Sequence record: LR756500.1
Reading direction: 5' to 3' (one strand)
DNA: 64,000 nt
Position 1 is the stretch's first letter, and each line of letters begins with the position of its first letter. Both the position numbers and the translations under genes were made by a program. Of the stretch, positions 3,686 to 57,070 are shown one piece after another. The notes under the pieces were generated by a model. The model was not told the origin of the DNA. It did not search any database and saw nothing but the letters and a program-made list of their open reading frames with translations.

Positions 3686-3717
3686 CAAAAAAAATCCGAT
3701 TTGATTAGAACCGGATT
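3686..3717 (-). terminator. Intrinsic terminator of attenuator 1
   Basis: AAATCCG...CGGATTT stem followed by a T-run on the minus strand. Confidence 0.75.
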
Positions 3718-3750
3718 TAATATTTTAGTTTATATTTATACAAACATATC

Positions 3751-3819
3751 TCATCCGGTAATAGGTGGTGTTCCTAAAGTTTGTGCTTGACCTAATGGAT
3801 ATGTAGATAATGTTTTCAT
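3751..3819 (-). CDS. Leader peptide 1, MKTLSTYPLGQAQTLGTPPITG (22 aa)
   Basis: Manually translated; lies between promoter 3857-3885 and terminator; codons match the downstream tRNA cluster. Confidence 0.75.
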   Translation of the reverse strand: MKTLSTYPLGQAQTLGTPPITG

Positions 3820-3856
3820 TTTTTTATATATAAAACCTTTTTTGTGTAATTTGATT

Positions 3857-3885
3857 ATTATATGCATTTTTTCTAAAATGTTTCG
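3857..3885 (-). promoter_or_regulatory. CGAAAC-N17-TATAAT promoter (also at 25512-25540, 33125-33153, 38561-38589, 46540-46568, 62277-62305; N18 at 46604-46633, 47689-47718, 57014-57043)
   Basis: Same two hexamers with 17-18 nt spacing found by eye in at least nine intergenic regions. Confidence 0.7.
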
Positions 3886-4498
3886 AATAATTATTATTAT
3901 ATGTAAATATAATTAAAAAGAAATTAAAATAAAAATTTTTATAAAAATTAGTTAATTATATTCGATAATTGTTCTTGTTGTTGGTTTAACTTCATGCCAT
4001 ATTTGTTTTGCATTTACCATATCTTGTTTAATCCATGGAGAATCTCCTAATACGGCTTTAAAATATTTACCGCTAGATATTTCTTTAATAACATATTCAT
4101 GTTGAGTTGAATTTTTTGATTGATCGCTATCTATTATTTTTTCGCTTACTATTGTATAAAGTTTAATTTCATTTTTTGTATCATAAATACCTTCCTCATA
4201 CATTATAGATCGTATTTGTTCTTCCGTAAATGTTCTAGTTTCCATATTTAATTAATTTATGTTATACTTAATAGATTATGTAATTCCATTTGTAATTCTC
4301 GTCTACCCATTTGTTTTAAATAATAACCCATTTTTTCATATATTTCAATATCTGATAGATTTTGACCGTCTATAGCAAATCTTTGATTATTAATACCATC
4401 AAATACTACATAATCTTTATCTAATAAATCTTTAAATGAAGTTTTAGCATTAAAATTTAGACCAAGACTTACTCCTAATTTTATTATTTCGTTTGTTT

Positions 4499-5275
4499 TC
4501 ATTCGTACAATATTATTCCTTTATTTGAATCTAATATGGGATGATTTTCATTATCAAAAGCCCAGAAAGGAGCATGACTTAATAATTTACCATTTTCTTC
4601 TCCTGTAAAATTATGATTACAATTATGTAATAATCGTATTCTTTTTTCACTTGCATTTTTACACTGTTGTAAATATACATGAGAAATATATGTACCAACT
4701 ACTTCATCATTTTCTCCAATAATAATACTTAATTCGCCTTTAAAATCTTTATATGTTTCCATTATTTGTTTCATTTCAATATTACCAGATGGAGCACATA
4801 ATAATATTTTTTTAATTTCTTTATATCTATTAGCCATATAAGCAGCTACTGCTCCACCTGCAGAAGTACCAATTAAATAAATATTTGGATCTTTTTCTCC
4901 ACATATTTCAATAGAATTGTTTATACAATATTCAATAACTTCATGAGTTTTTGAAATTATATGAGAAGGATATAAATTTCTATTTAATGTATTATACATA
5001 GATCTCGGAACACTATTATTCATTCTAACAAATGAACCTAATTCTTTTGATACTATATAATCACCTAGTTTAATATATTTATTTTCATAACCTTCAGCAG
5101 TGCCACCGTAGCCTGGAATATTAATTATTATATTCTTTGAATTACATTCATGAATAAATATTTCAGAATTATTTAATTTTATCTGCATTTTCTTTAGAAT
5201 ATAAATATATTTGTTTATGTTCAAACCAAAATTGAGCCCATTGTTCTTTAGCTTCTTTTTTATTAAGTCCTTCAA
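4499..5275 (-). CDS. Alpha/beta hydrolase (true start probably internal)
   Basis: PGYGG oxyanion motif, GTSAGG nucleophile elbow, downstream D and H (GENDEVV, HNCNHNF). Confidence 0.65.
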   Translation of the reverse strand: MKDLIKKKLKNNGLNFGLNINKYIYILKKMQIKLNNSEIFIHECNSKNIIINIPGYGGTAEGYENKYIKLGDYIVSKELGSFVRMNNSVPRSMYNTLNRNLYPSHIISKTHEVIEYCINNSIEICGEKDPNIYLIGTSAGGAVAAYMANRYKEIKKILLCAPSGNIEMKQIMETYKDFKGELSIIIGENDEVVGTYISHVYLQQCKNASEKRIRLLHNCNHNFTGEENGKLLSHAPFWAFDNENHPILDSNKGIILYE

Positions 5276-5826
5276 TTAAAAATTTTTTAAGTCTTTTTTT
5301 CCATTTGCGAGGTTTTATTTTAAAAGTTTTCATTTAATAATAAAATTGCAGAATTATTATAATAGCCATCTCCTGTAAGTTTATAATTTTTATTATTGTA
5401 AGTAAATATTATCCAATAATCCCATTGATATCCATTACTATCAAAATTAATTAATATCTTGTCTAATGTATTAATGTAAGATATAATATCATTAGGTCTA
5501 ACATATAATAATTCTATTGTTTTTACTTTGCCTGATAAAACAGATTGAATATCTTCTTCCATCCATTTTATTACCTGTTTTTCAACATCTTTTTTATTCA
5601 TTATTTATTATTAAATAGTTCAATATCTTCATATCTAAAAGATTGACCACACAATGTACATCTATCTTGATCTATAATTTTAAATGTATTTACATCTCTT
5701 TGCATAAATAATATTCCCTCTTCACATTCTGGGCAAATAGATTTATAAATAGATTCATTACTATATCTTTTTAAATTCATGTATTTAATAATCTTTATAG
5801 GATTATTGATATTTATTGCAATTAAA

Positions 5827-6915
5827 TTATTCATATTTTAAAGATTTAATAAGTTTAGGATTTAATAAAATATATTGTAATAATTTTATTAAATCATCAA
5901 CATCATTTTTATGAACAGTTTCAACTGTAGTGTGCATATATCTCATCGCTAATTTTAATAAAGCAGTCGGTATTCCATGTGGATAAGCATATGAATCTGC
6001 ATTTGTTCCAGATCCTCTACCACTCGCAGTTAATTGATAAGGTATTTTATTTTCCTTTGCTGTATCAATTATTAATTTTAATAAATTCTTTTGAATTGAT
6101 GGAGCATTCATAATAACTAAACCTTTGCCCGCTGATACTGTACCTTGTTTACTTTTATTATATGCTGGGCTTTCAGTATCATGAGTTACATCTATGACTA
6201 TAGCTATATCAGGTTTAATTTTTTCAACAACCATTTGAGCGCCATGTAATCCTACTTCTTCCTGTACAGCATTAACTATAATTAATTCAAAAGGTAATTG
6301 AATTTTATTTTCATATAATTTTTTAATTAATTGTGAATTAACAAATCCTCCTATTTTATCATCTAGAGATCTACCACAATAATAATCTCCTAAATCCATA
6401 TAGCCATCAGACATTGTAATAGGAGTTCCAATTGTTATTCCTAATTTTTCAACATCTTCTTTTTTAGAAACTCCTATGTCTATAAAAATATTTTCTATTT
6501 TTAATTCGAATTTATCTTCTTGAACATGAATAGCAGGGTGACCAAAAACACCTTTAACTTTTCCATTGTCTCCCCATATATCAACTCTGGCTGATGGTGT
6601 AATTGTGATGTCAGAACCACCTAAACGTCCAACTTTTATAAATCCTTCATTTGTAATATCAAATACAAAAAAACCTATTTCATCACAATGAGCATCTAAT
6701 AAAACAGTTTTTATTTCTGATGTTTCTTTTAATGTTTTTAATGCTAAATTAGAAATATAATAAGCATATGCATTACCATAATTATCTATTTCAACTTTGT
6801 CAGCATATTTTTTAACATAATCTATCCATACTTTTTGACCTCCTAATAATAATTCGTATCCACTAGGAGATGGTGTATTAATATATTTTTTAAGAAATTC
6901 TTTTCTGTTTTTCAT
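5827..6915 (-). CDS. M42 family metallo-aminopeptidase (FrvX/YsdC-like)
   Basis: SPSGYE, AHCDEIG, LDDK, VQEEVGL, DVT, HT metal-binding motifs. Confidence 0.85.
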   Translation of the reverse strand: MKNRKEFLKKYINTPSPSGYELLLGGQKVWIDYVKKYADKVEIDNYGNAYAYYISNLALKTLKETSEIKTVLLDAHCDEIGFFVFDITNEGFIKVGRLGGSDITITPSARVDIWGDNGKVKGVFGHPAIHVQEDKFELKIENIFIDIGVSKKEDVEKLGITIGTPITMSDGYMDLGDYYCGRSLDDKIGGFVNSQLIKKLYENKIQLPFELIIVNAVQEEVGLHGAQMVVEKIKPDIAIVIDVTHDTESPAYNKSKQGTVSAGKGLVIMNAPSIQKNLLKLIIDTAKENKIPYQLTASGRGSGTNADSYAYPHGIPTALLKLAMRYMHTTVETVHKNDVDDLIKLLQYILLNPKLIKSLKYE

Positions 6916-7806
6916 ATTTTAATCGTTTAGCTTCATATTGTAATTTTTTAATACAACTATATTCATGCTTTAATATTTTTATTTCATTAAGCATAACTTT
7001 ATCGCAATATGAACATTTATAGGCTTTAACTATTATCATTTTTATATTAAAGCATTTAAAATTGTTAATTTATTATTAATTGTAAAATTTATCATTAAAA
7101 AGGAATTATTTTTAATTTTATTAATATCAATAATTTTTTCTATATAAGTAAAATTTTCATTTAATAAAACTTTTTCATTATTAAAAATATCAATATAACT
7201 AATATTTATATTTTTAATTCCATATATTTTTACTTTTATTTTTTTATTATATAAATTAATAACTTCTAAATATGTTTCTATGTTTATTAATTCATTTTTA
7301 TTTAAATCAATATTAAAAACATATGTTCTATAAATACCATTTTTATCTAATGTATTTAATATGATCTCAGTATTAGTTGTATCATTAAAAACATGAGTTA
7401 CTTTTGAATCATAATAAATAGATGATTCAAGTATCCAACGACAATATTCAAAATCATGATTTAAATTAATTTCAGTTATAATTAATTCATTTTTGTTAAT
7501 TTGATATTTAATAGATATATTTGCTAATAATGTAAAATTTATAACAAATAATAAGAATAGTAGAAAAATATTTTTCATATTAATTTTTTATAAATATAAT
7601 AAAAAAGTTAATAAAAAAAAAATTAAATCCACTTAATTGCTTTTTGAAGAAAATTTGGTTTTTCTTTTATTTTTCTAGCCAATTTTAATTGTTTGTCCAA
7701 TGGGATATTATTAATTATAGAAAGGATTAATTCTTGTATTTCTATAATTTCTTTTTTAGAATTACCATTAATTTCAATTTCAATTTTTTGAATCATAATT
7801 TAAATA

Positions 7807-16714: not shown

Positions 16715-16771
16715 ATAATAAAGTATTAATTATGTAAATATAATAATAAAGTTTGATAAATAAAAAAAATG

Positions 16772-16842
16772 TAGCCCTAATAGGAATCGAACCCATATCT
16801 TATCGTCCGTGGCGATATGTTCTATCTTTGAACTATAGAGCC
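16772..16842 (-). tRNA. tRNA-Arg(ACG)
   Basis: Anticodon arm TATCG-CCACGGA-CGATA. Confidence 0.88.
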
Positions 16843-17203
16843 ATAAAAAGCAAGAATTAATTCTTGCTTTTATTATATTTTTCTTTTCTTTTAGCTAAAA
16901 TTTTTTCCCTATTTTTTATATAATAATTTGCATTATATTCTTTTAATAATATTTTAAGTTTCTTTTCTTTTTTATTAAAAATTATTTTTAAATCTTTTGG
17001 ATTAAAAATATATGCAAATCCTTCTAACATAATACCTTTTTTTCCTTTTGTTGTAGACCAATTAGCATCTACTATTTTTTCAACTTTACGAGTAATTCCT
17101 ATTAATGATATATCATCATGACCTAATGTTTTAATTGTTGATTTTATTACTACACTTTTTCCTTTTTTAAATTTTTTCATTTTTATTTTATTAAAAATTA
17201 ACA

Positions 17204-17653
17204 TTAAAATATTTCAAATTTTATTCCAGATATTTTTAAAAGTTCATCTGTTTCTTTTGTATATCCTGATTTATCATACGGACGTTCATATATAACTCTA
17301 GTAATACCAGCAGCTATTAAATGTTTTAAACAATTATGACAAGGTTGATGAGTACAATATAAAGTAGTATTTGATGTTTCTTTTCCTTCTTTAGAAGCAA
17401 ATAAAATACTATTCATTTCAGCATGAACCTCAAATAAATTGGACCATTCATGATGATCTTCTCTGTTAAATTCACCTATAAACTTTTCATTACAATTAAT
17501 AAATCCAGGAGGTGAACCATTATATCCAGTTGATATTATTCTATTACTTTTAACTAAAACTGCACCTACATGATAACTTACACAATTAGACTGTTCTGAT
17601 ATTCTTTGAGCTATATCTAAGAACATCTTATCTATTTTTTTATGTTTATCCAT
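17204..17653 (-). CDS. dCMP deaminase
   Basis: VGAVLV, TGYNG, HAEMN, PCHNC zinc motifs. Confidence 0.9.
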   Translation of the reverse strand: MDKHKKIDKMFLDIAQRISEQSNCVSYHVGAVLVKSNRIISTGYNGSPPGFINCNEKFIGEFNREDHHEWSNLFEVHAEMNSILFASKEGKETSNTTLYCTHQPCHNCLKHLIAAGITRVIYERPYDKSGYTKETDELLKISGIKFEIF

Positions 17654-17658
17654 TTAAA

Positions 17659-18012
17659 TTATATAAAAAAATTAATTAAACTTTTTAAATTATTTATGTT
17701 GTCATTTTTATTAAAAAATGCGTCAAATGGATCATAATTTAAATGCTTGTATTTTTTACTTATTTTACTTGTTGTACTTGAACCTATTATAGATGTCGCA
17801 GGTCGATGTGTTTTAATTATTGTTGCTGCATCATATCCACTCATATTTGTAGTTTGAATATTCATTAAAATTACATCATATTTATTTTCAGCTGCTTTCA
17901 TTATAGCTTCAGAATTACTTTCAACATAATCTATAGAATATTTTTTATCTTTTAAAATTAATTCTATTAAAGTAGAAAAATTTTTATCTTCATCAGATAC
18001 CAGTATATTCAT
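17659..18012 (-). CDS. Stand-alone receiver domain, phospho-acceptor Asp apparently replaced by Asn
   Basis: NILVSDED ... YDVILMNIQTTNMSGYDA (canonical DLILMDIQMP). Confidence 0.55.
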   Translation of the reverse strand: MNILVSDEDKNFSTLIELILKDKKYSIDYVESNSEAIMKAAENKYDVILMNIQTTNMSGYDAATIIKTHRPATSIIGSSTTSKISKKYKHLNYDPFDAFFNKNDNINNLKSLINFFI

Positions 18013-18070
18013 GTCAATAATTTTTTATTTAATTATATATCATGCAATTAAATATACTAATATATCTTAA

Positions 18071-18484
18071 CTAATGTTTAACATAATATTTTCCATTTTC
18101 ACAATTTATACATAAATCAGGTTGTAATTTAAAACCAATATTTAAATGTATTTTTATTGATGGAATGTTATCATTATCAATATAAACCAAACCTTTTTTA
18201 TCTTTATAAAATTCTTTAACAGCTAAACCTCCATATCCTTTATTTTGATATTCTTTTGAAATTTTTAATGGAACTAATTTCCAATAATCAGAATATCCAG
18301 TTATACAACATAACTGTGGATTTAAAAATCCTATAATAATATCATCTAAAAAAATTATTTTAAGAGATCTTTTTAAATTAATATCAAGTTTCCAATGATT
18401 TAAAAATATTGTATGTTCTTTTAATATTAAAGTAACTTTTTTTCGTTGATCTATATTTAAATCATAATAAGGTTTTAAAATCAT
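18071..18484 (-). CDS. GNAT family acetyltransferase
   Basis: YQNKGYG acetyl-CoA motif; NIPSIKIHLNIGF. Confidence 0.5.
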   Translation of the reverse strand: MILKPYYDLNIDQRKKVTLILKEHTIFLNHWKLDINLKRSLKIIFLDDIIIGFLNPQLCCITGYSDYWKLVPLKISKEYQNKGYGGLAVKEFYKDKKGLVYIDNDNIPSIKIHLNIGFKLQPDLCINCENGKYYVKH

Positions 18485-19335
18485 AAATCTAAATCTAAAT
18501 CGGAATTAATAAAATTATTAAAGTCTAAATTATCTTCAATATCTATAAATAAACTTAATAATTTAAATATTATAAATATAGAAAAATAAGCTATTATTGG
18601 TAATACTAAAAAAATAAATGTTCCAAAAATCCAAACTATAAATGAAATTATTCCCCAATAAATTACAGTGGATCCTTCTAGCATATTTTTAGACGGATTT
18701 TGTCTATTTTCTATCGAACAATATTTTCCATAAATTAAATCAAATTTAGCATGAATTTCTTCACCTTTATAATTAAAGGGTAAATTAACGTTATAATTAG
18801 TCGGTAAACCAAAATATTTTCTTCTTAAATACATTAATACTTGGGTTAATGCTCCTAACATAAAATAAAAAAATACACAAAATAAAATATAGATAATTAT
18901 CATAATTTAAAATATTTAATTAAAAATTCGTTTATATCAATTATAGGTTCATTTTTCTCTATTTTTAATTTAGCAGAATCATAGAAATTTTTATATGCAT
19001 AGTCTGATAACATACAGTTATCATCAAATAATATTATAGCTAAGCTTATCATTAATATTAATAATATTAATGAAATATTACTTATTATAAATGGTAAAAA
19101 AAGATGAGATGCTCCACAAGCAAAAAGAATTAAAAATACTACAATTAACATTGATTCGCATATTAATAATGCACCAACTATATTTTTGTATATTTGTCCT
19201 TCTATTCTAGATAAAAAATGTTTCATATATTTAAATTTAATTTGTAAATATAATAATTAAGTTAATTAAAAAAAACATTAAATGCATATTTAGACCAAAA
19301 AATTGTGATAAATATAATAAAATAAAATTATTTAT

Positions 19336-19674
19336 ATGGAACATTTAATTAGATATGAAGATTTCATGGTTGAAAAAATTATGAATGAAGAAGAATTAGT
19401 AAAAGCTGATCAATCTCAAATTATGAAAAAGATTGCTAGAAGTTTTGATAATGATGATTTAAAATTATATTTACAAGGTATGATGTTAGATCTAGATATT
19501 ACAACTAGAAAAAAATATAAAAAACTTTTAGATGACGGTAAATATAGAGAATTAATTACTTTTTTAATTAAAGGAACTTCTGATCCATTAACAAGTAATA
19601 AACTATTAGCAATTAAAAAGGAATTTCTTACAAGTAAAGGTGAAAGTACAACTACTGAAGAACCTGAATTGTAA
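19336..19674 (+). CDS. Hypothetical protein, the only credible plus-strand gene
   Basis: Fills a gap between minus-strand genes; ATATATAAAAATAAA upstream, hairpin terminator near 19795-19825. Confidence 0.7.
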   Translation: MEHLIRYEDFMVEKIMNEEELVKADQSQIMKKIARSFDNDDLKLYLQGMMLDLDITTRKKYKKLLDDGKYRELITFLIKGTSDPLTSNKLLAIKKEFLTSKGESTTTEEPEL

Positions 19675-19896
19675 GATAATTGAGCTTAATTGGACTTCTG
19701 CTTTATGATGTCATTTATCTAAGCCTCAACCTTATCCTATCAAGAGAAACGACTAGATTATTACGAGTTACACATTGTATACAGTATTAACGACAAAAGC
19801 TTAATTTAACATTAAGCTTTTTTTATCTCCTGTTTTCTCTTTATGTGGTACCAATTTTCTCTATATAAAAATATAGCGACATCTTCTCTGATTATC

Positions 19897-20457
19897 TTAC
19901 ATTAATTGGGTAATATATTTAGATGGAACATTATCAGTTAAATAAACATCATTTAAAGTTTTATAAAAAACAATATTATCTTTAACCATTGATTTACAAT
20001 CAATTAATAAAATTACTCCACCATTTTTTTTATCATGTCTAGCTCCGGTTTCTAAAGCCTTTTGTATGTGTTCTTCTCCATATAAATGAACATGATGTCT
20101 TGTCATTTTATTAAGACCTTCTTTTTTAATTTGTGATAATAAACGAAATCCTGTTCCATGATACAATTTTGTAGGAGGTATAACCTTTTCAAAATCATTT
20201 TTAATATTAATAGAATGACCTTGATTAGCTTTAATCATAGTTTTATTTTCATTAAAACGAAATCTTTGTTTAGGACATGTTTCTACTATATTAATAATAT
20301 CATCTACGGTAAAATCTTCTCGCTCACTTGCCTTAGATATAATTTCATCAACGTTAGCCCATCCATATTCATCTAATTTAAGATCAATAGTTTCAGGTCT
20401 ATGCCTTAAAACATAAGTTAAAAATTTACTTATTTTATTTTTTTTGTTTGAATCCAT
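19897..20457 (-). CDS. kptA: RNA 2'-phosphotransferase Tpt1/KptA
   Basis: LRHRP, LDEYGWA, KQRF, ANQGHS, LYHGT, RHHVHL, VYLTD. Confidence 0.9.
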   Translation of the reverse strand: MDSNKKNKISKFLTYVLRHRPETIDLKLDEYGWANVDEIISKASEREDFTVDDIINIVETCPKQRFRFNENKTMIKANQGHSINIKNDFEKVIPPTKLYHGTGFRLLSQIKKEGLNKMTRHHVHLYGEEHIQKALETGARHDKKNGGVILLIDCKSMVKDNIVFYKTLNDVYLTDNVPSKYITQLM

Positions 20458-20954
20458 TATTCCTTTAGTTCTACATAATCTTCAATCGTAACGAATGACC
20501 AACTATCTTTACCCCATAAATGAAACTTTTCTAAAGTTTCTAATATACCTTCAGCTTTTTCTATTGACGTAAATATTCTAGCAGAAGTCATATTTAATTT
20601 GTTATTTATTCCATATCTAGTAACAGTATCACTTATTGAAACATGTCTAAATAATTGTCTATCTGTATCATAACCGATTATAATAAATTTTTTTTCCATA
20701 TAATGAAATATTTTTTATTATATATCGATACACTAAATAGTTTCATTTATGTAACACAAATACTATATTACCTTTTAGCTCAATCTTTGAATCTTTACTT
20801 GCATATGTTGTTGAAACATTAGTAGATCCTGATACATGTTGTGCAATACAATGTTTAACATTATATCCTGATTCTAATAATTTATTTAAATCCATAACAT
20901 CTGTATTTGATTCTGGATTTAAAATATATACTTTTTCCATATTTAAAATTTTAG

Positions 20955-21028
20955 TGGACCCTATAGGACTTGAACCTATAACCTCATCGTTATGAGCGAT
21001 TTGCGCTCACCAATTGCGCCAAAGGTCC
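20955..21028 (-). tRNA. tRNA(CAU), probably Ile2 (lysidine type)
   Basis: GGACCTT acceptor and GCTCATAAC loop typical of Ile2; Met not excluded. Confidence 0.75.
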
Positions 21029-21035
21029 GTTTTTA

Positions 21036-21476
21036 TTATTTGTAAAGTTTTAATTTTCCTGTTATATTATTAATTTCTTCTTCATCAGCTGGTCCTATTG
21101 CTACACATGTTTTAGTAGGAACTCCATTAAATATAGTATCACCAGCATCTGTAATAAGTACTGTAGGAAGTTTAGCATCTTTAGCTTTATAATAAATTAA
21201 TTCTAATTCTTCTTCAGAATTACATTCTAAAACAATTTTAGTAAATTTTTCTTCCAACCATTTATCTAATGAAGAATTAATTGCATATGGAATAGTTATA
21301 ATTTTTTCATTATAAATAAAAGTTGAACCATCCTTAACTTCTTTTCTAATTCTAATATCTTTTTCACTTAAAGATAATACAGCACCTAAAGAAGCATGAG
21401 ATACTTGAGCAGCTAATTTACCAGCCGGCATATTTAAATCTTTTCTTGCTACTATTACTTGTTTTGCTTTTGACAT
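21036..21476 (-). CDS. pth2: Peptidyl-tRNA hydrolase type 2
   Basis: KQVIVARKDL, GKLAAQVSHA, TKIVL, TDAGDT, TCVAIGP. Confidence 0.9.
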   Translation of the reverse strand: MSKAKQVIVARKDLNMPAGKLAAQVSHASLGAVLSLSEKDIRIRKEVKDGSTFIYNEKIITIPYAINSSLDKWLEEKFTKIVLECNSEEELELIYYKAKDAKLPTVLITDAGDTIFNGVPTKTCVAIGPADEEEINNITGKLKLYK

Positions 21477-21525
21477 TTTTATTTACTTTATTTGTGAACC
21501 AGAGAGGATTCCCTATCTTTATTAG

Positions 21526-21597
21526 TACTCCTACTGGGAATCGAACCCAGATTTAAAGATTAGAAATCTTTTATTGTATCCATTCAATTATAGGAGC
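21526..21597 (-). tRNA. tRNA-Arg(UCU)
   Basis: Anticodon arm AAAGA-TTTCTAA-TCTTT. Confidence 0.88.
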
Positions 21598-21659
21598 ATT
21601 TTAATAATTTATATTTGTGAAAAATAAGTTAATTACTCTATCAATAAATTAAATAACTT

Positions 21660-22090
21660 ATAATACCTAGAAATTGAAACCGTTCAAAAATTGAATACTC
21701 AAAAGTATTCTACCGTTTATTTGAATAAAAATTCGGCAAAAAAGGTCATGATTCCGAGATTAAAGTGCAGAAATACATCCGAATTAGCACTTAACTTGAT
21801 GAGGTACAAGTTAAACCCATGTGATATAGCTCATTTGCAAAGCTGTACTGACGTCTTTTCATATGGAAAACCCGTATGAAATACATAGTAACTGACATCT
21901 TAAATATTTTATAATCTATATAATTCATAATATCAAAGAACGGTTTCAACTTCATCATCGGTATCCCACTAAGTAGGGAAACTTTTTAACTTTTCGACAG
22001 TTAACATCGTTTACATGTTTCGCTAGTAACCTACGACACACTGATGCGTTCAGTAGAGACGCCATTAATTAACCTTAATGGGAAGGTTAT
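21660..22090 (-). ncRNA. Candidate large structured ncRNA of unknown family
   Basis: No credible ORF, raised GC, many hairpins, 16-bp long-range helix 21670-21685 / 21938-21953. Confidence 0.5.
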
Positions 22091-22675
22091 AATAAATTAA
22101 TATTATGTGTAAATATAATAATTAAGTTTTACAAATTAAAATATTTATGATCTTTTTTCAAAATAATTTTAAATGAAAATTTAATTAAATATTTATAAAA
22201 AATGAAAAGGGTTATTATCATTTAAATCATCAGTATAAAGATTTTTATCATCAACTTTAACATTTTCTTCAATATTTAAATCCTCTTCTGAAAATTCATC
22301 TTCTTTTATATTTTCATCAATATGATATAAACCGATAATACAATCTTCTCTCTTTCTTCTATATGATTCAAAATAATCAGAATCTACAGGTATACATTTA
22401 TGAATTATATCTTCAGTTATAAGTGTATAACTTGATTCATCATAAACTACACCAGGATCTCCAAAATAATAACCTACTTTACCTTTTTCTTTATATTGCA
22501 AAACTCTGGGACCTGTTCTTCCCATTCCATCTGCATCATACACATATAAAGCATCTTTTATTAAAATATATTCTGCACTTACGAATTTAAATTGAATTTC
22601 ATTATAAACTTCAGGATAAAATTTCTTTAAATATTCAGATTGAAATTTTAATTTTTTTCTAATATTTCAGTATGA

Positions 22676-23203
22676 CTACTCATTATATTTTTTATTAAAA
22701 AGTTTTGTTGCTATTTTTAAACCTTCATTTTTATAATCAATATCTTTTCCTGATTTATAAACTCCAAATAGTCTCCATCTTTCATAATTAATCATATAAT
22801 TTAATCTTTTTTTACTTAGATATTTATATAAAGTATTTAAATTTAAAATGTTATTTCTTTTAAAGATTTTAATACATTCTATTTCATTAAAAGTAAATTC
22901 AAAATGATCATATATCTTTTTAATAGATTTAACATTAATATTAAAAAAATTATTATAAGGTTTTTTATCTTTATTTAATTGAGTTTCCTGATAAATTTTT
23001 ATTTTTTCTTTATTTTTATCTCTCCATTTCTCTTGATAATTTAAATCATGTTCACGTTTATCTTTAATTGTATATCTTAAAGCTCTTTGTTCATGACCAC
23101 ATTTTATACATTTACATTGTATACTTGATTTATATTTATACATTGAAAAAGTAGTAAAACCATGCACTTTACATTCTTTTTGTATTTCTCCTATTTTCAT
23201 CAT
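22676..23203 (-). CDS. Zn-ribbon/endonuclease-like protein (start trimmed to MMKIGE because the called N-terminus overlaps tRNA-Asp)
   Basis: CKVHG...CKCIKC motifs. Confidence 0.4.
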   Translation of the reverse strand: MMKIGEIQKECKVHGFTTFSMYKYKSSIQCKCIKCGHEQRALRYTIKDKREHDLNYQEKWRDKNKEKIKIYQETQLNKDKKPYNNFFNINVKSIKKIYDHFEFTFNEIECIKIFKRNNILNLNTLYKYLSKKRLNYMINYERWRLFGVYKSGKDIDYKNEGLKIATKLFNKKYNE

Positions 23204-23214
23204 TAAAAAATTTG

Positions 23215-23291
23215 CGGACTTAATCAGATTCGAACTGACCTGTTTTTCCTGAGTGACAGTCAGGTGGCCACACCAAGCAACCCCTAAGTCC
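23215..23291 (-). tRNA. tRNA-Asp(GUC)
   Basis: Anticodon arm CCTGA-CTGTCAC-TCAGG, G73. Confidence 0.9.
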
Positions 23292-23292
23292 A

Positions 23293-24186
23293 TTATGCTA
23301 TAAATACCTTTTCATTATTTTTAAATACTAATTTTCTTCCTTTAATCCAACCTTTATTTATCCATTCATAAACTTCTTCTTTTTTTACTCTTATAGATTT
23401 CTTCTCTTCTAAATTATGTATCCAACACTTTCCATACTGACTATTTCTTGAACCTAATTGAGATATTTTATTTGCTTTACTTATTTTTTCTCGATGCTCT
23501 TTAGCTAATTTACGTCCTATTTGAATTCCAACTAATTCACCTGATAAATATCTTGGATCATCTACATTTACCCAAAATTTATTTCCGTCTTTATCTTTTA
23601 CACTTGTTTTATGTTTCATTATTCCAACTAATTCACTACTTAAAACTCTAGAATCATTTAAACGACATCTAATAATANNNNNNNNNNNNNNNNNNNNNAA
23701 AGAAAAATATTTACTTTGATATTGATATTCACCTGATTTTAATTTTATATTATTTACATCACATTTAAAAGAATTTCCTTCTTTATCTATAACATTGACT
23801 TTTCCTATACTTATAGGGAAATATTCATTATTATATCTTGAATCACTTTTTAACATTAATGTTTTATTATTTTTTTTATCTTTAACTAATACCAATCCTT
23901 TAGTATTCCAACCATAACCACCTAACATAATATTATAAACATCTTTTCTTTTAACAAACTCTTCATTTACTAACTCAGCCTCTTTAGCAAACATCTCTTC
24001 AAATGTATCAAAATTATAAAGAACTATACGTTCAAAATTGTCTATTCCATACTTCTTAAATGCCTTATGCAAATAAGTACCTGATCCCATATAACCATCT
24101 TCCAACTTATCCGTCTGATGACAGCCTATATAAATTTTATTGTTAATTTTATTAATAATTTCATAAACTATATTATACTTACTCAT
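23293..24186 (-). CDS. GIY-YIG (Seg-like) homing endonuclease; contains a 21-N gap at 23678-23698
   Basis: NIVYEIINKINNKIYIGCH, YMGSG, YNIMLGG, repeated VKDK motifs. Confidence 0.8.
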   Translation of the reverse strand: MSKYNIVYEIINKINNKIYIGCHQTDKLEDGYMGSGTYLHKAFKKYGIDNFERIVLYNFDTFEEMFAKEAELVNEEFVKRKDVYNIMLGGYGWNTKGLVLVKDKKNNKTLMLKSDSRYNNEYFPISIGKVNVIDKEGNSFKCDVNNIKLKSGEYQYQSKYFSXXXXXXXXIIRCRLNDSRVLSSELVGIMKHKTSVKDKDGNKFWVNVDDPRYLSGELVGIQIGRKLAKEHREKISKANKISQLGSRNSQYGKCWIHNLEEKKSIRVKKEEVYEWINKGWIKGRKLVFKNNEKVFIA

Positions 24187-37664: not shown

Positions 37665-37934
37665 ATGATCAAATGTTTTAAAAATAAATATTATAAGTAG
37701 GCCCTAACCCTACATAATCGTCCTGACTTCCACAGTATAGAACATCTCGAAGTAAATCTTTCATTAGTAATCATATTTATCGTATGTGCCCCTATTACTA
37801 AATGATTAACGTTGAATGTTAATTACAGTTGCTTAATCCATCATAATATCCAGTTATAAATTTGGCAAAATTTTATACTGTTTGAGATTTTTTTATTATA
37901 TTGCCATAATGAAAATCAATAAAAACATTAACAG

Positions 37935-38017
37935 AGGAAGGAGTGGGATTCGAACCCACGGTACCGTAGTACGTCAGTTTTCAGGACTGAATTCATAAAC
38001 CTCTCGAACACCCTTCC
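37935..38017 (-). tRNA. tRNA-Ser(UGA)
   Basis: TCAGT-CCTGAAA-ACTGA, long variable arm GTAC-TACG-GTAC. Confidence 0.88.
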
Positions 38018-38198
38018 AGTATATTTTAATTCAAATAAATATCTTGTTCTACACAATAATTATTGAACTCAAAAGCCATCATATATAATTTATCAAAAAT
38101 TTTATCATTATTAGTTTGTTTTAATTGACTAATAAAAAAATTAGCGATTTTTTGATAAATTTTTATTTTTATTTTTTTTATCATTTAATTAAAATTTG

Positions 38199-38286
38199 CA
38201 GAGAGAGCGGGATTTGAACCCGCGGATCAATTACTCGATCATCACCTTAGCAGGGTGACCTATTAAACCAGCTCTAGCACCTCTCT
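38199..38286 (-). tRNA. tRNA-Ser(GCU)
   Basis: TCACC-CTGCTAA-GGTGA, long variable arm, G73. Confidence 0.9.
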
Positions 38287-38291: not shown

Positions 38292-38543
38292 TTACGAATA
38301 TAATAAACTTGAAGATGAATCTGAATTTAAACTCGAATTTTCACTCAGATCAAGCGGTGTCATATGTTGATGTCCTTTAAGAGTCCATAAAACTAAACCT
38401 TTAGTAATTTTGATATAACCTTCACTCATAAGTTGATTAACTCTATTCTGACCATATATAGCATGTAAATTTGCTATAGTATTGCTCATATTGAATTCAC
38501 CATTCTTAATTGTATTCATTATTGAAATGTCTATCGATTTCAT
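38292..38543 (-). CDS. Small protein with Ser-rich C-terminus directly upstream of two tRNA-Ser genes
   Basis: Ends LSENSSLNSDSSSSLLYS; promoter at 38561-38589. Confidence 0.6.
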   Translation of the reverse strand: MKSIDISIMNTIKNGEFNMSNTIANLHAIYGQNRVNQLMSEGYIKITKGLVLWTLKGHQHMTPLDLSENSSLNSDSSSSLLYS

Positions 38544-46369: not shown

Positions 46370-46506
46370 TGGCGGGGGAATTCGGGATCGAACCGAAACT
46401 GAATGTTTTCAACACATTTGCTCTACCAATTAAGCTTTTATACTGTAATAACTTAGAGTTTCTTTTCAGACTAATTTTAAAGTTATAGATGTAAATCTAT
46501 TCCCCC
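46370..46506 (-). tRNA. tRNA(UGA) in a class I body, interrupted by ~62-nt element (about 46436-46497) after position 9
   Basis: GGGGGAA-TA|insert|GCTT-AATTGGTA-GAGC-A-AATGT-GTTGAAA-ACATT; G73 plus CCA. Confidence 0.78.
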
Positions 46507-48720: not shown

Positions 48721-48725
48721 CTTTG

Positions 48726-48909
48726 TGATTGTAGAAGGACTCGAACCAACAACCCCTCACTTTCAAATTACTGACAAAAATACTATTAAGCGTCCCTAAA
48801 TTCATTTTGTTTTTATTCTATTTATTATAAATATATCATCCACTTATGCGCTATAAGCTTATATACACCTACAATAAAAATAAGACTCTAACCATTGAGC
48901 TATACAACC
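48726..48909 (-). tRNA. tRNA gene with ~112-nt insertion in the anticodon loop; anticodon unresolved
   Basis: Acceptor GGTTGTA/TACAATC, intact D and T arms, stem CTTAT/GTGAG separated by about 48764-48875. Confidence 0.7.
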
Positions 48910-52243: not shown

Positions 52244-52314
52244 AGGGCCTAGAGGGATTCAAACCCCCGTAGTCAGCTTTGCAGGCTGCGACCTAATCAC
52301 TCGGACATAGGCCC
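52244..52314 (-). tRNA. tRNA-Cys(GCA)
   Basis: CAGC-CTGCAAA-GCTG, U73. Confidence 0.88.
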
Positions 52315-52321
52315 ATATCGT

Positions 52322-53278
52322 TTATCTATTAAAAAACTCTTTTTCGTTATAATACAACATACTTAATCTAGTAGCAAATGTTTTATCAGATGTACTATCT
52401 CCTATCATTATACATTGTTTAGGATCTAACATATATTTATATATTAGATCTATACCCATTCCACTTTGAGGTTTTCTACAATAACAAATTTCCTTAGGTA
52501 TACTATGAGGACAATATTTATAATCATCAATAATATTATTCATTAAAGAATTTGTTTCTTTAATTATATCTTCAACGTTATCTATAAAGTGACCTTTATT
52601 AACTCCTGATTGATTAGTTACTGCTAAAATTAAAAATCCTCTATTTTTATATTTTTGTAAAATGCTTACGGTATTTTCTAAAATATATTGATCATTTAAG
52701 TTAATTGGATATTTTTCTCCACTAACTGTTTTTCTAACAGTACCATCTAAATCAATTAATAATGCTTTATTTTTTAAATTAGTATCCCAAATTCTTTCAA
52801 ATTCTGTAATTACTAATTCATTATAATCTGTAACTTTAGGCTTTTTAAATTCTTTTGAATACTTAAATATTGCTGGAAGAACCCAAACATTTGGATTATT
52901 TTTAAATATAATAGGAATAGTATCTGTATAATTATGAAAGCTTCCTGTAATTTTTTTAATTCTAATATAAGAATTAATTAATGCATCTTCTTTAGAAGTA
53001 TTCATTAAATGAAATCCTATTGTGTGTTTATGATATTTACAATTATCTATAAATAAATATCTTGTATTTTCATTAGGAAGAGTTGCATCAATTACTATTT
53101 TCTTAACACCGTCTTTTATATGTTTTTCATGAAGTGCAGCTAAATCTATCATAGAAATATTTAAGCTATCTCTATTTAAAATTAAATATCCTAATTTTTC
53201 GTATTCTTTTGAAATACTAGATTTTCCACTTGCTGGATATCCTCCAATTAAAACAGTATCAGTATTACAAAGTTTCAT
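52322..53278 (-). CDS. Polynucleotide kinase/3'-phosphatase (P-loop kinase + HAD domain)
   Basis: GYPASGKS, VIDAT, LIDLDGT, TNQSG, CRKP, IGD. Confidence 0.75.
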   Translation of the reverse strand: MKLCNTDTVLIGGYPASGKSSISKEYEKLGYLILNRDSLNISMIDLAALHEKHIKDGVKKIVIDATLPNENTRYLFIDNCKYHKHTIGFHLMNTSKEDALINSYIRIKKITGSFHNYTDTIPIIFKNNPNVWVLPAIFKYSKEFKKPKVTDYNELVITEFERIWDTNLKNKALLIDLDGTVRKTVSGEKYPINLNDQYILENTVSILQKYKNRGFLILAVTNQSGVNKGHFIDNVEDIIKETNSLMNNIIDDYKYCPHSIPKEICYCRKPQSGMGIDLIYKYMLDPKQCIMIGDSTSDKTFATRLSMLYYNEKEFFNR

Positions 53279-53428
53279 ATTTCTTTATATTTTTTGAATA
53301 GTTCATCATATAATGCTTCATCTAACTTTTTCATTTTAGTAAACAATTTACCAATTCCTGATTCAGCTTTTGTTTTAGTACCATTCTTAATAGCATTCAT
53401 TAAGCCGATAATCTTTTGTTCAAGTTCT

Positions 53429-53680
53429 TTAATATGCTTCATATAATTCAACAATATGTCCAATTTCTTTAAATTGCTTAGCTATTTCATTAGCTTCATT
53501 TATATCTTTTCTAAAAGATACTGTAATAGGTTCATTAGTATAATAAAGCTCATCATATATTTTTTTACATTCATATAATGAAAAATCAGTATTATCTTTT
53601 ATTAACCTAATTGTAAATAAAGGTCTTTTACCTTTTGTTAATAAGCTTACATTATATTTAATTTCCTCGTCTTCTTTCAT
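53429..53680 (-). CDS. Ribosomal protein L7/L12 C-terminal-domain-like protein (tentative)
   Basis: IRLIKDNTDFSLYECKKIYD...EANEIAKQFKEIG resembles the L7/L12 CTD pattern. Confidence 0.4.
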   Translation of the reverse strand: MKEDEEIKYNVSLLTKGKRPLFTIRLIKDNTDFSLYECKKIYDELYYTNEPITVSFRKDINEANEIAKQFKEIGHIVELYEAY

Positions 53681-54279
53681 ATTCTATATATAAATAATAT
53701 GATATTATCGTAAATAAAACCCAAAATAAAACATGATACAGATGTATCATAGTAGGTAAAAACGGCAAAGAAAGTGTTTGTAAAATTACTTCACTTACAC
53801 CAATTACTAACCACTTATTAAAAATACCTTTCTTCTTCCAAAAGTTTTTTAATTTATTCCAATAATAATTAAATTCTTTAATCATATTGTAAATATAATA
53901 ATAATGTTTAACAAATAAAAATGTAATACTTTAAAGAGTGTAGTGAAGCTGCAGCTTCTGTGGGTACTACACATTTTATCCACTTTTATTAAAATCTCAT
54001 AGGTTAACAACCAATCATTTGAGAGTTTAATATGTTATTTGAATTCTTTTTTTCCCTTTACATGAATCAAGAGAGCACTGTAAATTATAATTTTCAGTTT
54101 TTAAATAAAAATTTTCTTTTTTAATTATTTCTAAATTTATTTCTTGTTCATCATTAATTTCATTATTATTTTCATCTGGAATAAACCATATAATAATTAT
54201 AATCATTATCATACCAATAAATGTAATATAGTCTTGTATTAAAATTTTATTCATAATCTATTTATATATTGTAGCCGGG

Positions 54280-55098
54280 TTAATATCTTATTGTAAATAA
54301 AGAATAATCTATTTTATAATCTTTATAATATTCTTTAAATATTGGTAAATTTTCTAATTTTAAATTATCTAAATTTTTAAATTCATTTTTTTCTATTAAT
54401 CTTAAATCTATATTATTATATTCTAATACTTTATTCATTTTATAAATATCTCTATCTTTCATCCAGCCTTTTACTTCGATATAAATGTTAAAGTCAGGTA
54501 AATAAAAATCTGATGTATAAAACCTATTATTTAAATATTTTAATCTTTTTCTTTCCCAATAGATATTATTACTAGTTAACCATTCTGCAACTTTCTTTTC
54601 CCAGGTCCCTTGTACTTTAATATTAAATTTACCATTAAATACTTCATACCATAAAGTATGATGATCACCGTTATTTTCTAAAAATTTTATTCTACCTCTA
54701 CTTATAGATTCTTTATGTTTTTCAGTTAATGATATACCTATTCTCCGTTTAGTTGCACCTATAGATAATTTATTTCTATATTCTTTAGCCTTTTCTTTTC
54801 CTAATGCTTCTTCTAAAGTTCTTCCCTTTCTCCAAATCCATCCGTTAGTTGTAATACATCTTTTAATAGGTTCTTTCCCATTTCTATGAATTAAACAAAA
54901 TGAAAAATGTCCATTTAATGATTGTGCTTTTTCAAACTCTTTACCACATTCACATATATAAATATTTTTATCAACTATAAAATACTTACTTTTTTTCTTA
55001 ATAGCCTTTAAAATTATATCAAACTTATCACATTTAAATCCATATGTTGATAATCCTCTTTGTGTTTTAAATTCTTTTCCACAATTACACTTAAACAT
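54280..55098 (-). CDS. Homing endonuclease (two C2H2-like fingers, NUMOD3-like, PD-(D/E)xK)
   Basis: CNCGKEF, CECGKEF, VQGTWE, YTSDF...YIEVKG. Confidence 0.65.
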   Translation of the reverse strand: MFKCNCGKEFKTQRGLSTYGFKCDKFDIILKAIKKKSKYFIVDKNIYICECGKEFEKAQSLNGHFSFCLIHRNGKEPIKRCITTNGWIWRKGRTLEEALGKEKAKEYRNKLSIGATKRRIGISLTEKHKESISRGRIKFLENNGDHHTLWYEVFNGKFNIKVQGTWEKKVAEWLTSNNIYWERKRLKYLNNRFYTSDFYLPDFNIYIEVKGWMKDRDIYKMNKVLEYNNIDLRLIEKNEFKNLDNLKLENLPIFKEYYKDYKIDYSLFTIRY

Positions 55099-55160
55099 AA
55101 TGATATTTTTATTTTATATATCATTATATCTAGTCTAAACCAATTACCATTATGACCTTG

Positions 55161-55242
55161 TAACGAAGGAGAGATTCGAACTCTCACGCAATTAAGCATC
55201 AGTTCCTAAGACTGACGGGTCTTACCGTTCCCCCACTTCGTC
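55161..55242 (-). tRNA. tRNA-Leu(UAG)
   Basis: TCAGT-CTTAGGA-ACTGA, long variable arm, A73. Confidence 0.9.
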
Positions 55243-56367
55243 ATTTATATTTAAAACATTATACGGTCATCATCGGGTTCATATCGTGATTTATCAAATA
55301 ATACATGTATTGGACTATTACCATCACTTTGTATTTTAACCGTATAACCGGTTTGCTCTTTAATTCTATTAAACATCTTTTCCATTGCAGCTGGCATATC
55401 TTTAGTTGCTATACCTTCTATTTGATCACCAAATGAAATAGGCTGAACATTTCTAACTATTGGAAAACTCCATTCAAAATCCATAATTTTATTTTTTAAA
55501 TTGTATCAATTTCTGGTGAACCATCATTCATTGTTATAAAATAATAATCTCTCGCAAACATTAATGTACTTGGATCTTCAACCATTTTATTTATCTTTCT
55601 TACTGCATCGAGAATAATCTTTGGTACATTTGAAATTCTTTTATCATTAAAATTAATTACACTTATATTTGGATAATTCTTTTTAATATAATGTTTGTGT
55701 ATATCAGGATATGATAAACTTGAAAGATAATCTATATCCCATAGTTTACCTTGATTTTTTTCAGATAGACCTATAAGCTTTCCTGATCTCCATATTCCAA
55801 ATGCATTATTTCCTAAAATTAAAATACTTAAATAAACATTCTTTATATTATTTGAACTCATAATTTTATTTTTTAACTCTATAACATATTCCTTCTAAAA
55901 TATATTTATCTTCTTTATCTATTCTAATTTTAGGAGCAGGAAGATCTTCATATTTACTATAAATAGCTTCTAATACACCACCATCACATTTTTTATTTTT
56001 ACATTTAGGACCATTATAATTTCTTTCGAATGATGTCCACATTTCACTTCCACATTTACTGCATATAGCAGATAGTCCTATATCATATATTCTTCCACTC
56101 ATGACTTACAAATACTTAGATTACTTTCAAATACAAATGAATTTTGTTCAATTGCTTTTCTAATATATCTCATAAAAAGAATCGCTTTATCTTCATTTGA
56201 AAAAGTTGCATCTCCAATATCTTGAATAGGTACTGGAAATAAATATTTTTTATTATCAACATTTACATTATAATATAAATGTCCTGCTCTATAATATGAA
56301 AAATAAACTTTATTGTCTTTTATAATTTCTTTTATATTTGGTAACATAACTTTTTTTATTTAGTTTG

Positions 56368-56444
56368 TCCGCTAAGATGGATTTGAACCAGCATGTAACC
56401 AATTAACCTTTCAACCGGGTATCAGCCGGAGGGTATATTAGCGG
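56368..56444 (-). tRNA. tRNA-Ile(GAU)-like RNA with non-canonical arm order
   Basis: CCGCTAA/TTAGCGG acceptor, CCGG-CTGATAC-CCGG arm only 8 nt from the acceptor, D-loop-like AATTGGTTA placed 3' of it. Confidence 0.6.
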
Positions 56445-56455
56445 TTTATAATTTG

Positions 56456-56526
56456 CAGATCTACAAAGATTCGAACTCTGAAAGACGGGTCTGGAATCCG
56501 TCGTGTTACCATTACACTATAGACCT
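56456..56526 (-). tRNA. tRNA-Trp(CCA)
   Basis: ACGGA-TTCCAGA-CCCGT, G73. Confidence 0.85.
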
Positions 56527-56537
56527 ATTTAAATTCG

Positions 56538-56613
56538 TGGGAACTGAGAGATTTGAACTCCCGGCCTTAATTTTGTAAGAATTCTGCTCTAAACCAAACT
56601 GAGCTAAGCTCCC
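56538..56613 (-). tRNA. tRNA-Val(UAC)
   Basis: Loop CTTACAA, GGGAGCT acceptor, A73. Confidence 0.88.
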
Positions 56614-56632
56614 ATTTACACCTAAACTTTTG

Positions 56633-56716
56633 TACTACGTATGGGATTCGAACCCATGAGTTGTTTCCAACACAACAGTGAAAGTGTTGCGACCTAAACC
56701 TCTAGTCGAACGTAGC
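56633..56716 (-). tRNA. tRNA-Glu(UUC) with long variable arm
   Basis: CAACA-CTTTCAC-TGTTG then GTTG-GAAA-CAAC. Confidence 0.85.
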
Positions 56717-56738
56717 ATTTAAATTTGGGTGGAAGATG

Positions 56739-56822
56739 GGTACCTGATAGGATTCGAACCTACGATGTTTCTAATGTATAGAGCCACAATCTATTGCCTT
56801 CGGCCGCTAGGCTACAGATACC
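56739..56822 (-). tRNA. tRNA-His(GUG) with 14-nt variable region
   Basis: G-1:C73, ATAGA-TTGTGGC-TCTAT. Confidence 0.88.
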
Positions 56823-56845
56823 ATATTAAATATTTCAAAGAACAA

Positions 56846-56880
56846 AATAAAAAGGTTCAAATCTTGCGATTTGAACCTTT
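56846..56880 (-). terminator. Intrinsic terminator of attenuator 3
   Basis: AAAGGTTCAAATC-GCAA-GATTTGAACCTTT then T-rich; boxA-like GTTCTTTGAA at 56834-56843. Confidence 0.85.
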
Positions 56881-56910
56881 AAATATAGAATTATATAGTT
56901 AATGCACAAA

Positions 56911-56985
56911 TCACATAATATTAATGTTCACCTCTTCTAGAAGATGTTCCCAAATATGAATGATATGTACAGAAATTGCTTTCAT
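56911..56985 (-). CDS. Leader peptide 3, MKAISVHIIHIWEHLLEEVNINIM (24 aa)
   Basis: Manually translated; between promoter 57014-57043 and terminator. Confidence 0.78.
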   Translation of the reverse strand: MKAISVHIIHIWEHLLEEVNINIM

Positions 56986-57070
56986 TTGTTTATATATTAA
57001 AATTTTATTTGTAATTATATGCAAATATATATAAAAAGTTTCGCATTTACAAATTTATTTTAAATTATTT

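Follow-up and report, generated by a model that had tools for sequence, protein, structure and literature searches.

In the stretch of 64,000 nucleotides (nt) from phage record LR756500.1 analysed here (hereafter the window), groups of transfer RNA (tRNA) genes, in one case together with a transfer-messenger RNA (tmRNA) gene, stand behind short leader open reading frames (ORFs) and intrinsic terminators, and the codons of the leaders mirror the tRNAs encoded downstream. The same correspondence is found in related huge phages, where each leader follows the composition of its own tRNA group. We suggest that each unit is probably a ribosome-mediated (leader-peptide) attenuator, which would exert negative feedback on the phage tRNA supply. 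Position 1 is the first letter of the window, and all feature coordinates below are window positions.

Organisation of the tRNA units

Units A, B, C and E, all on the minus strand, share the order of a promoter, an ORF of 20–24 codons, an intrinsic terminator, a boxA-like motif and tRNA or tmRNA genes. This fourfold order had been proposed in a preliminary description of the window, and the anatomy is borne out by motif counts, ORFs and terminator calls, the terminator of unit B being the weakest. The promoter motif CGAAAC-N17/18-TATAAT occurs nine times in the window, always on the minus strand, against 0.03 expected, and 13 times in the whole genome (a 429-kb virus record identical to LR756500.1, 462 kb, in which the window spans 324729-388728). 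The gene strand of the whole genome has eight copies of the boxA-like motif GTTCTTTG, four of them just behind the unit terminators, and the motif is also present in LR756501 and in the IMG/VR relative described below; judging by its resemblance, it may act as a Nus-type boxA at the head of a stable-RNA operon.

Unit A
3857-3885, minus strand: promoter, match to the CGAAAC-TATAAT motif
3819-3751, minus strand: leader ORF of 22 codons plus TGA
3752-3760, minus strand: candidate antiterminator strand ACCGGAU(G), overlapping the stop codon
3718-3692, minus strand: intrinsic terminator, called by the terminator tool
3665-3676, minus strand: boxA-like motif TGTTCTTTGGAA
111-3639, minus strand: tRNA-Ala, Leu(taa), Pro, Tyr, Gln, Gly(gcc) and Thr

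Unit B
25512-25540, minus strand: promoter, match to the CGAAAC-TATAAT motif
25496-25425, minus strand: leader ORF of 23 codons plus TAA
25429-25436, minus strand: candidate antiterminator strand just before the stop codon, weak (-6 to -7 kcal/mol)
25398-25376, minus strand: terminator hairpin plus TTTTTTCGTTT, weakest of the four, from our own scan
25351-25362, minus strand: boxA-like motif GGTTCTTTGACA
about 25323-25310, minus strand: second promoter-like motif, after the boxA-like motif
16771-25285, minus strand: tRNA-Asn, Asp, Arg(tct), CAT (Ile2-like) and Arg(acg)

Unit C
33125-33153, minus strand: promoter, match to the CGAAAC-TATAAT motif
33104-33042, minus strand: leader ORF of 20 codons plus TGA
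33034-33045, minus strand: candidate antiterminator strand at the stop codon, 10 base pairs (bp) with the terminator 5' arm
33013-32985, minus strand: intrinsic terminator, 12-bp stem and T run, called by the terminator tool
32967-32954, minus strand: second promoter-like motif TTATTATATTTACA, between the terminator and the boxA-like motif
32927-32938, minus strand: boxA-like motif
29220-32921, minus strand: tmRNA (32921-32511), then tRNA-Lys, Met, Phe and Met

Unit E
57014-57043, minus strand: promoter, CGAAAC-N18-TATAAT
56985-56911, minus strand: leader ORF of 24 codons plus TGA
56900-56935, minus strand: stretch able to pair weakly with the terminator 5' arm
56880-56851, minus strand: intrinsic terminator, 13-bp stem and T run, called by the terminator tool
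56833-56844, minus strand: boxA-like motif TGTTCTTTGAAA
56821-56455, minus strand: tRNA-His, Glu, Val and Trp
55242-55160, minus strand: tRNA-Leu(tag)
52314-52244, minus strand: tRNA-Cys(GCA), 46.6 bits with Rfam, missed by ARAGORN

At the hairpin of unit B the terminator tool makes a call on the plus strand only, and our own scan gives -7.4 kcal/mol and a T run on the minus strand. A further tRNA of unit A, Gly(tcc), lies just outside the window. The CAT tRNA of unit B (21028-20954) resembles what we take to be tRNA-Ile2, with E. coli ileX as the presumed standard. ORFs are interspersed among the RNA genes: PTH2 (21476-21036) and a GIY-YIG-like ORF with a gap of N letters in unit B, an HNH ORF and others in unit C, and several along the whole of unit E (52244-56821), where tRNA-Cys(GCA) stands directly downstream of a Pnkp-like gene (53278-52322).

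From the context of the leaders we infer that they are translated. They start 15–38 nt after the -10 element of the window units and have the same A-rich start context as the real genes of this phage, in which a Shine–Dalgarno-like word precedes only 6% of the long ORFs and starts are A/T-rich. The stop codon is TGA in three of the four window leaders (A, C and E) versus 14% of the long ORFs in the genome.

Codon content of the leaders in the window

A leader codon was scored as cognate when its box or its amino acid is served by the tRNAs downstream of that leader. The proposed enrichment in such codons holds for three leaders: A, with 5 Thr, 3 Leu (TTA), 3 Pro, 3 Gly, 2 Gln, 1 Ala and 1 Tyr (18 of 21 codons, p 7e-7 against genome codon usage); B, with 5 Asn, 3 Asp, 2 Arg (AGA) and 2 ATA (12 of 22, p 1e-3); and E, with 3 His, 3 Glu, 2 Val, 1 Trp and 2 Leu (CTN) (11 of 23, p 5e-4). 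It is not significant for leader C (6 of 19), and this unit by itself is insufficient to carry the claim of a codon match. When the leaders were compared with the clusters of the other units, all off-diagonal comparisons among A, B, C and E were depleted. The match also exceeds that of random short ORFs from this genome in the same three units: among 1276 ATG ORFs of 18–30 codons, none reaches A or B, E falls into the top 1.3%, and C is unremarkable.

Units in related huge phages

Relatives of the phage were reached through an M42 peptidase gene located 2 kb upstream of unit A, which led to a 187-kb IMG/VR fragment (3300027833_000012, 65% identity) and to the GenBank huge phages LR745206.1 (635 kb), LR756504.1 (636 kb) and LR756501.1 (735 kb). 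Genomes larger than 634 kb all fall into the Mahaphage clade with predicted Bacteroidetes hosts (PMC7162821), and the words "attenuat" and "leader" are absent from that publication. Among the other searches, ORF 58135-57071 had no relatives in IMG/VR, blastn of the leader-plus-tRNA stretches against GenBank phages matched only the phage itself, and the second promoter-like motif used as a pattern returned mostly unrelated contigs, whose tRNA arrays are without leaders. The contexts of Pnkp homologues proved to be T4-like contigs without tRNA leaders, the terminase Pfam model had no match in the phage genome, and Pfam scans of the largest ORFs and tblastn of a 961-amino-acid tail-fibre-like protein were uninformative on kinship.

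In the four relatives, tRNAs lie in dispersed same-strand clusters. An automatic scan with rules fixed beforehand (an ATG ORF of 12–45 codons, the longest qualifying ORF being kept; a hairpin with a T run, of -9 kcal/mol or lower, within 90 nt after the stop codon; a tRNA within 450 nt) returned 24 units in five genomes, 23 of them in the four other huge phages. Together with window units A–C, added by hand, these form a set of 27 units. The search for co-varying leaders thus yielded 23 further cases in which leader composition follows its own cluster, and the unrelatedness of the leader sequences noted for the window also extends to the relatives, whose leaders are unrelated to those of the window. 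Promoters differ as well: they are of the Bacteroidota-like TAnnTTTG type in two genomes, and the CGAAAC promoter was not found in the relatives.

The relatives group their tRNAs differently, yet each leader matches its own group. For example, a leader with 7 Gln in 15 codons precedes three tRNA-Gln; one with 5 Ile, 3 Arg (AGA) and 3 internal Met precedes Arg-tct, Ile and Met; a Leu/Ser/Cys leader precedes Leu, Leu, Ser, Cys, Ser, Ser, Leu, Leu; and a Phe/Asp/Glu/Ala leader precedes Phe, Glu, Asp, Glu, Ala, Asp. In LR756501.1, a leader (L128 ORF 1844-1912, minus strand) in which each of the six Leu codons appears once or twice precedes tRNA-Leu with four anticodons (tag, gag, caa and taa).

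Over the 27 units, 336 of 721 leader codons belong to their own set, compared with 132.9 +/- 16.4 when sets are permuted (47% versus 18%; z 12.4, 0/100,000 permutations). With the window excluded, the figure is 291 of 636 (z 11.7), and permutation within genomes only gives z 8.0 and again 0/100,000. An explanation by chance, in which the codon match is a composition artefact of short AT-rich ORFs before ordinary terminators, could appeal to unit C and to the abundance of short ORFs in AT-rich genomes, of which the 1276 counted above are an instance. However, it is all but refuted by the permutations over all units and within genomes and by the rank of A and B above every random ORF. In addition, the same scanner found no such units, and no matched ORF, in a bacterial genome (a Flavobacteriales metagenome-assembled genome with 29 tRNA loci). 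The tRNA array of crAss001, which runs directly from its promoter, and another IMG/VR tRNA array are also free of such units, and Tenacibaculum phage PTm1 has no tRNAs.

Cognate codons are not spread evenly. Their fraction is 0.15–0.33 at codons 2–5, rises to 0.67–0.85 at codons 9–16 and returns to 0.15–0.33 in the last six codons. Codons 2–5 form a semi-conserved A-rich start, and N-termini follow M-(K/R/T/N)-(T/N)-(I/V/L)-N. This conservation might hint that the small ORFs encode functional peptides, with a composition reflecting peptide function and not codon sensing, which we consider extremely improbable: the leaders are otherwise unrelated, and the only thing they share is a composition that tracks the neighbouring tRNA genes. 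Moreover, for Leu, Ser or Arg the leaders draw on both codon boxes when tRNAs downstream serve both; where only one box is served, the cognate box is used in 22 of 32 cases versus 17 expected, a modest excess.

Some leaders begin right after an upstream tRNA and would therefore represent internal attenuators nested in the array. The stop codons of the 27 leaders are TAA in 18 cases, TGA in eight and TAG in one.

Pairing between leaders and terminators

Each unit had been described as carrying sequence at or around the leader stop codon complementary to the 5' arm of the terminator. Taken one by one, the window units differ in this respect: the complementarity is clear in A (-10.9 kcal/mol, p 0.003) and C (-14.0 kcal/mol, p < 0.003) and individually weak in B and E. 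In a dinucleotide-shuffle test that considers pairing before the 3' arm is made, p <= 0.05 was obtained in each of A, B, C and E. Complementarity of the 5' arm to the leader 3' part reaches p <= 0.05 in 19 of the 27 units (Fisher 1e-19). Throughout this set, the stop codon stands 20–54 nt (median 29) before the hairpin, and nearly all hairpins are canonical terminators with a G+C-rich stem and TTTT(G)TTTT; the naked transcript retains the terminator in 24. In these respects the units would be three-strand attenuators, and the leader, terminator and antiterminator fit the his/trp/thr-type geometry that had been proposed, except that the 1:2 pairing of the trp type is unsupported.

Folds were computed on the transcript as it exists before the terminator 3' arm, which replaced equilibrium folding. 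In all four window units, the 5' arm is then predicted to be paired upstream (P 0.7–0.9) until the ribosome is about five codons from the stop, and free (P 0.1–0.3) once the ribosome is at the leader end.

A related arrangement, designated unit D, includes the following features.

38589-38561, minus strand: promoter, CGAAAC-N17-TATAAT
38292-38543, minus strand: ORF of 83 amino acids, with its stop 6 nt before tRNA-Ser(gct)
37934-38286, minus strand: tRNA-Ser(gct) and tRNA-Ser(tga)

Counted from an in-frame ATG at 38363, the last 23 codons of this ORF include nine Ser. Its tail ends with ..LYS, as does the Ser/Arg leader of LR745206 (L113:3131-3205). Two ordinary ORFs (17204-16857 and 29660-29328) supply with their final codons the 5' arm of a terminator-like hairpin (16843-16880 and 29294-29335, minus strand), which would be melted by a ribosome standing at the stop codon. 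The distance from these hairpins to the tRNA-Arg(acg) and tRNA-Met that follow them is 6–10 nt.

These observations bear on two alternatives that keep the sensing of the same tRNAs by the ORFs. In the first, the output would be Rho access, RNase processing or precursor stability, and the hairpins would be processing or stability elements. This could account for the Ser-rich frame of unit D ending 6 nt before tRNA-Ser without a terminator, for the two hairpins formed from the ends of ordinary ORFs immediately in front of tRNA-Arg(acg) and tRNA-Met, and for the lack of a switch in equilibrium folds of three of the four units. Nevertheless, we regard it as unlikely because the hairpins of nearly all 27 units are canonical terminators, and the complementarity between the 5' arm and the leader 3' part would have no role.

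The second alternative has the opposite sign: if the phage tRNAs are already present, and only then, the leader would be translated fast enough for the ribosome to keep up with RNA polymerase and open the terminator, making tRNA expression a self-reinforcing, feed-forward process. Terminator suppression by ribosomes that stop a few bases ahead of the terminator is known (PMC4824070), and the two ordinary window ORFs mentioned above do end inside hairpins. In the units, by contrast, the stop codon is too distant for a ribosome standing on it to reach the hairpin, and neither the antiterminator complementarity nor the upstream placing of cognate codons would be of use, which makes this possibility very improbable.

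Proposed mechanism

According to the attenuation model, transcription would begin at a sigma-70-like promoter, and a ribosome would translate the leader of 16–42 codons, in which codons 9–16 are packed with codons of the tRNAs encoded downstream. If all cognate aminoacyl-tRNAs are plentiful, the ribosome should reach the last codons and cover the antiterminator strand or separate it from the 5' arm, so the terminator would form and transcription would stop. If any cognate tRNA is scarce, the ribosome would stall upstream, the antiterminator strand would pair with the 5' arm, and polymerase would pass the terminator and reach the tRNA genes. By resemblance only, the boxA-like motif that follows the terminator may then provide a processive polymerase over a long, mostly untranslated operon. 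As a result, a tRNA group would be made if, and only if, the decoding of its own codons is slow. Several amino acids would be polled per leader, as in multivalent thr and ilv attenuation, and internal attenuators would gate sub-clusters in the larger relatives.

Several points weigh against this interpretation. Taken alone, the codon match of leader C (p 0.075) and the antiterminators of units B (-7.0 kcal/mol, p 0.17) and E (-6.5 kcal/mol, p 0.29) do not reach significance. Equilibrium folds with a ribosome footprint switch only unit A, the terminator winning in B, C and E; the model therefore needs kinetic control, as in trp. Over the 27 units, the 1:2 anti-antiterminator is not above shuffles (mean z -0.35, 2/27 with p <= 0.05, Fisher p 0.057). 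Despite its Ser-rich frame, unit D has no terminator between the ORF and tRNA-Ser, and in units B and C the attenuator could be bypassed from the second promoter-like motif, which stands after the terminator and ahead of the first RNA gene. No tRNA-Ile(GAU) was found in the phage, yet leader B has five and leader E six Ile codons. Since the distance to the tRNAs reaches several kb and ORFs and further hairpins intervene, the assignment of genes to each attenuator is presumptive. Finally, coupling of transcription and translation in the host, probably a member of Bacteroidota, is an assumption of the model.

As for the physiological trigger, we may speculate that it is tRNA cleavage by host defence and not any shortage of charged tRNA. 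The genes for Pnkp, PTH2 and tmRNA among the tRNAs fit such a trigger, as does the view of phage tRNAs as counter-defence presented in PMC10264068 and PMC12409363. In a broader proposal, which is less likely than not, huge phages of the Mahaphage kind would run a modular, codon-addressed tRNA homeostat. Each tRNA sub-operon would have its own translated probe polling the aminoacyl-tRNA pool for the species encoded behind it, and nested probes would allow graded, group-by-group induction. In the strongest version, the homeostat would be a counter-defence circuit, in which anticodon nucleases or other tRNA-depleting immunity would turn on only the matching clusters, alongside Pnkp, PTH2 and tmRNA.

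Genomic context

The phage genome has 24% G+C, with genes nearly all on the minus strand, and all its tRNA genes lie inside the window or directly beside it (26 tRNAs and one tmRNA by ARAGORN, and a further tRNA-Cys by Rfam only). Genetic code table 11 fits throughout, alternative codes being not indicated. The public runs that hold the window are groundwater DNA metagenomes. A Rfam gathering scan of the window gave only tRNA and tmRNA, and no T-box fold.

Several genes for the repair or rescue of translation, as well as homing endonuclease genes, are located among the tRNAs:

21476-21036, minus strand: PTH2 peptidyl-tRNA hydrolase gene (1e-34)
53278-52322, minus strand: Pnkp-like polynucleotide kinase/phosphatase gene
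32511-32921, minus strand: tmRNA
31196-31792, minus strand: HNH homing endonuclease gene
23293-24216, minus strand: GIY-YIG-like ORF
23678-23698: gap of 21 N within ORF 24216-23293

ORF 24216-23293 (307 amino acids as written) is weakly similar to GIY-YIG endonucleases in its N-terminal part, and both sides of the gap are in one frame with 21 N; this length is only an estimate, so the continuity and frame of the ORF are not established. About 1.5 kb separate the gap from tRNA-Asn on its upstream side, and about 390 nt from tRNA-Asp on its downstream side. It overlaps no promoter, leader, terminator or tRNA and matters solely for the question of whether Asp, Arg(tct), CAT and Arg(acg) belong to the unit headed by leader B.

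Of the second promoter-like motif, which is longer (..AAC TTTwTTATTATATTTACA..), the gene strand of the genome has 28 copies and the opposite strand four. The motif often follows a terminator T-run, and 15 of its copies lie in the window:

59786, 53897, 48920, 46619, 43490, 36266, 32963, 30037, minus strand: second promoter-like motif
29169, 25319, 22117, 19252, 16742, 12604, 3911, minus strand: second promoter-like motif, continued

Some other RNAs are unusual. A suppressor tRNA with anticodon CUA is encoded at 48720-48652 (minus strand), and treating TAG as sense adds almost nothing to ORF density genome-wide. Just upstream of it, ARAGORN with introns allowed reports a tRNA Gln-ttg (48725-48909, minus strand) with a 110-nt intron and a poor T stem, a doubtful call. 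A tRNA-like RNA at 46370-46500 (minus strand) ends in an encoded CCA and carries an insertion behind the 5' strand of its acceptor; it is preceded by two tandem CGAAAC promoters (46633 and 46568) and followed by boxA-like ACGTTCTTTAACA at 46343-46331. Rfam matches only its tRNA positions 6–65, and ARAGORN gives no call. The stretch 21700-22060 (minus strand), after a second-type promoter-like motif and upstream of tRNA-Arg(tct), is G+C-richer and structured-looking, with no Rfam family at E <= 1. In the IMG/VR fragment 3300027833_000012 (L099, reverse 400-760), a G+C-rich, structured-looking RNA stands behind two tandem Bacteroidota-like promoters, upstream of a Met-Met tRNA pair.

Comparison with known systems

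The closest parallels are trpL, hisL, pheL, leuL and the multivalent thrL and ilvL of Enterobacteria, where a translated leader with regulatory codons precedes a terminator whose 5' arm has an alternative pairing, and stalling causes read-through. The phage units share with these amino-acid operons the block of regulatory codons, the terminator, the pairing of the 5' arm with the leader 3' end and, as in thr and ilv, the presumed sensing of several amino acids. However, their targets are tRNA genes, with tmRNA in one case, and not biosynthetic enzymes; the aminoacyl-tRNA that would be sensed is the product made, which would close a direct loop. One phage leader would poll up to seven or eight amino acids, and the units, being without a detectable 1:2 anti-antiterminator, are many per genome and partly nested inside arrays. 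The kinetics of leader-peptide attenuation are treated in PMC1183508.

Other systems resemble the units in separate features. In rRNA operons, boxA/Nus antitermination serves a long RNA operon that is for the most part untranslated, with boxA at its head, and the boxA-like motif (GTTCTTTGA/G..) follows all four window terminators; the likeness is one of sequence. In the T-box riboswitches, too, the state of a specific tRNA decides between terminator and antiterminator before translation-related genes, but the uncharged tRNA is bound directly, without a ribosome or an ORF. Leader-peptide attenuation of a gene of the translation apparatus is represented by pheST of E. coli (pheM leader), which differs in its aminoacyl-tRNA synthetase target, its single amino acid and its single bacterial locus.

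For fifty years, the reason for the presence of tRNA genes in phages has been a matter of debate between codon compensation and escape from tRNA-targeting defence. The regulation of these genes has, to our knowledge, hardly been addressed. The units suggest that phage tRNA expression is not blind: decoding speed would be measured codon by codon and fed back on transcription. Each leader may thus serve as a readable label of the tRNAs that the phage treats as one regulatory group, and simple reporters or cell-free systems could then be used to test what phage tRNA arrays do. With a length of about 150 nt and a specificity readable from sequence, the modules could also be used as sensors of individual tRNA supply.

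In PMC10264068 and PMC12409363, phage tRNA arrays are interpreted as compensating for codon usage or as a counter-defence against immunity that targets tRNAs. The present phage is similar in its near-complete tRNA set beside genes for tRNA repair and ribosome rescue (Pnkp, PTH2 and tmRNA), and different in its candidate attenuators, absent from the two other arrays checked (crAss001 and IMG/VR).

Full-text literature searches returned no report of attenuators controlling tRNA genes, phage or bacterial. We likewise know of no earlier case in which leader-peptide attenuation controls tRNA genes, and, if the proposed mechanism is true, these attenuators would be the most multivalent described. 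The class of mechanism is classical; its novelty lies in the target, in how multivalent the leaders are and in the use as a module by different huge phages.

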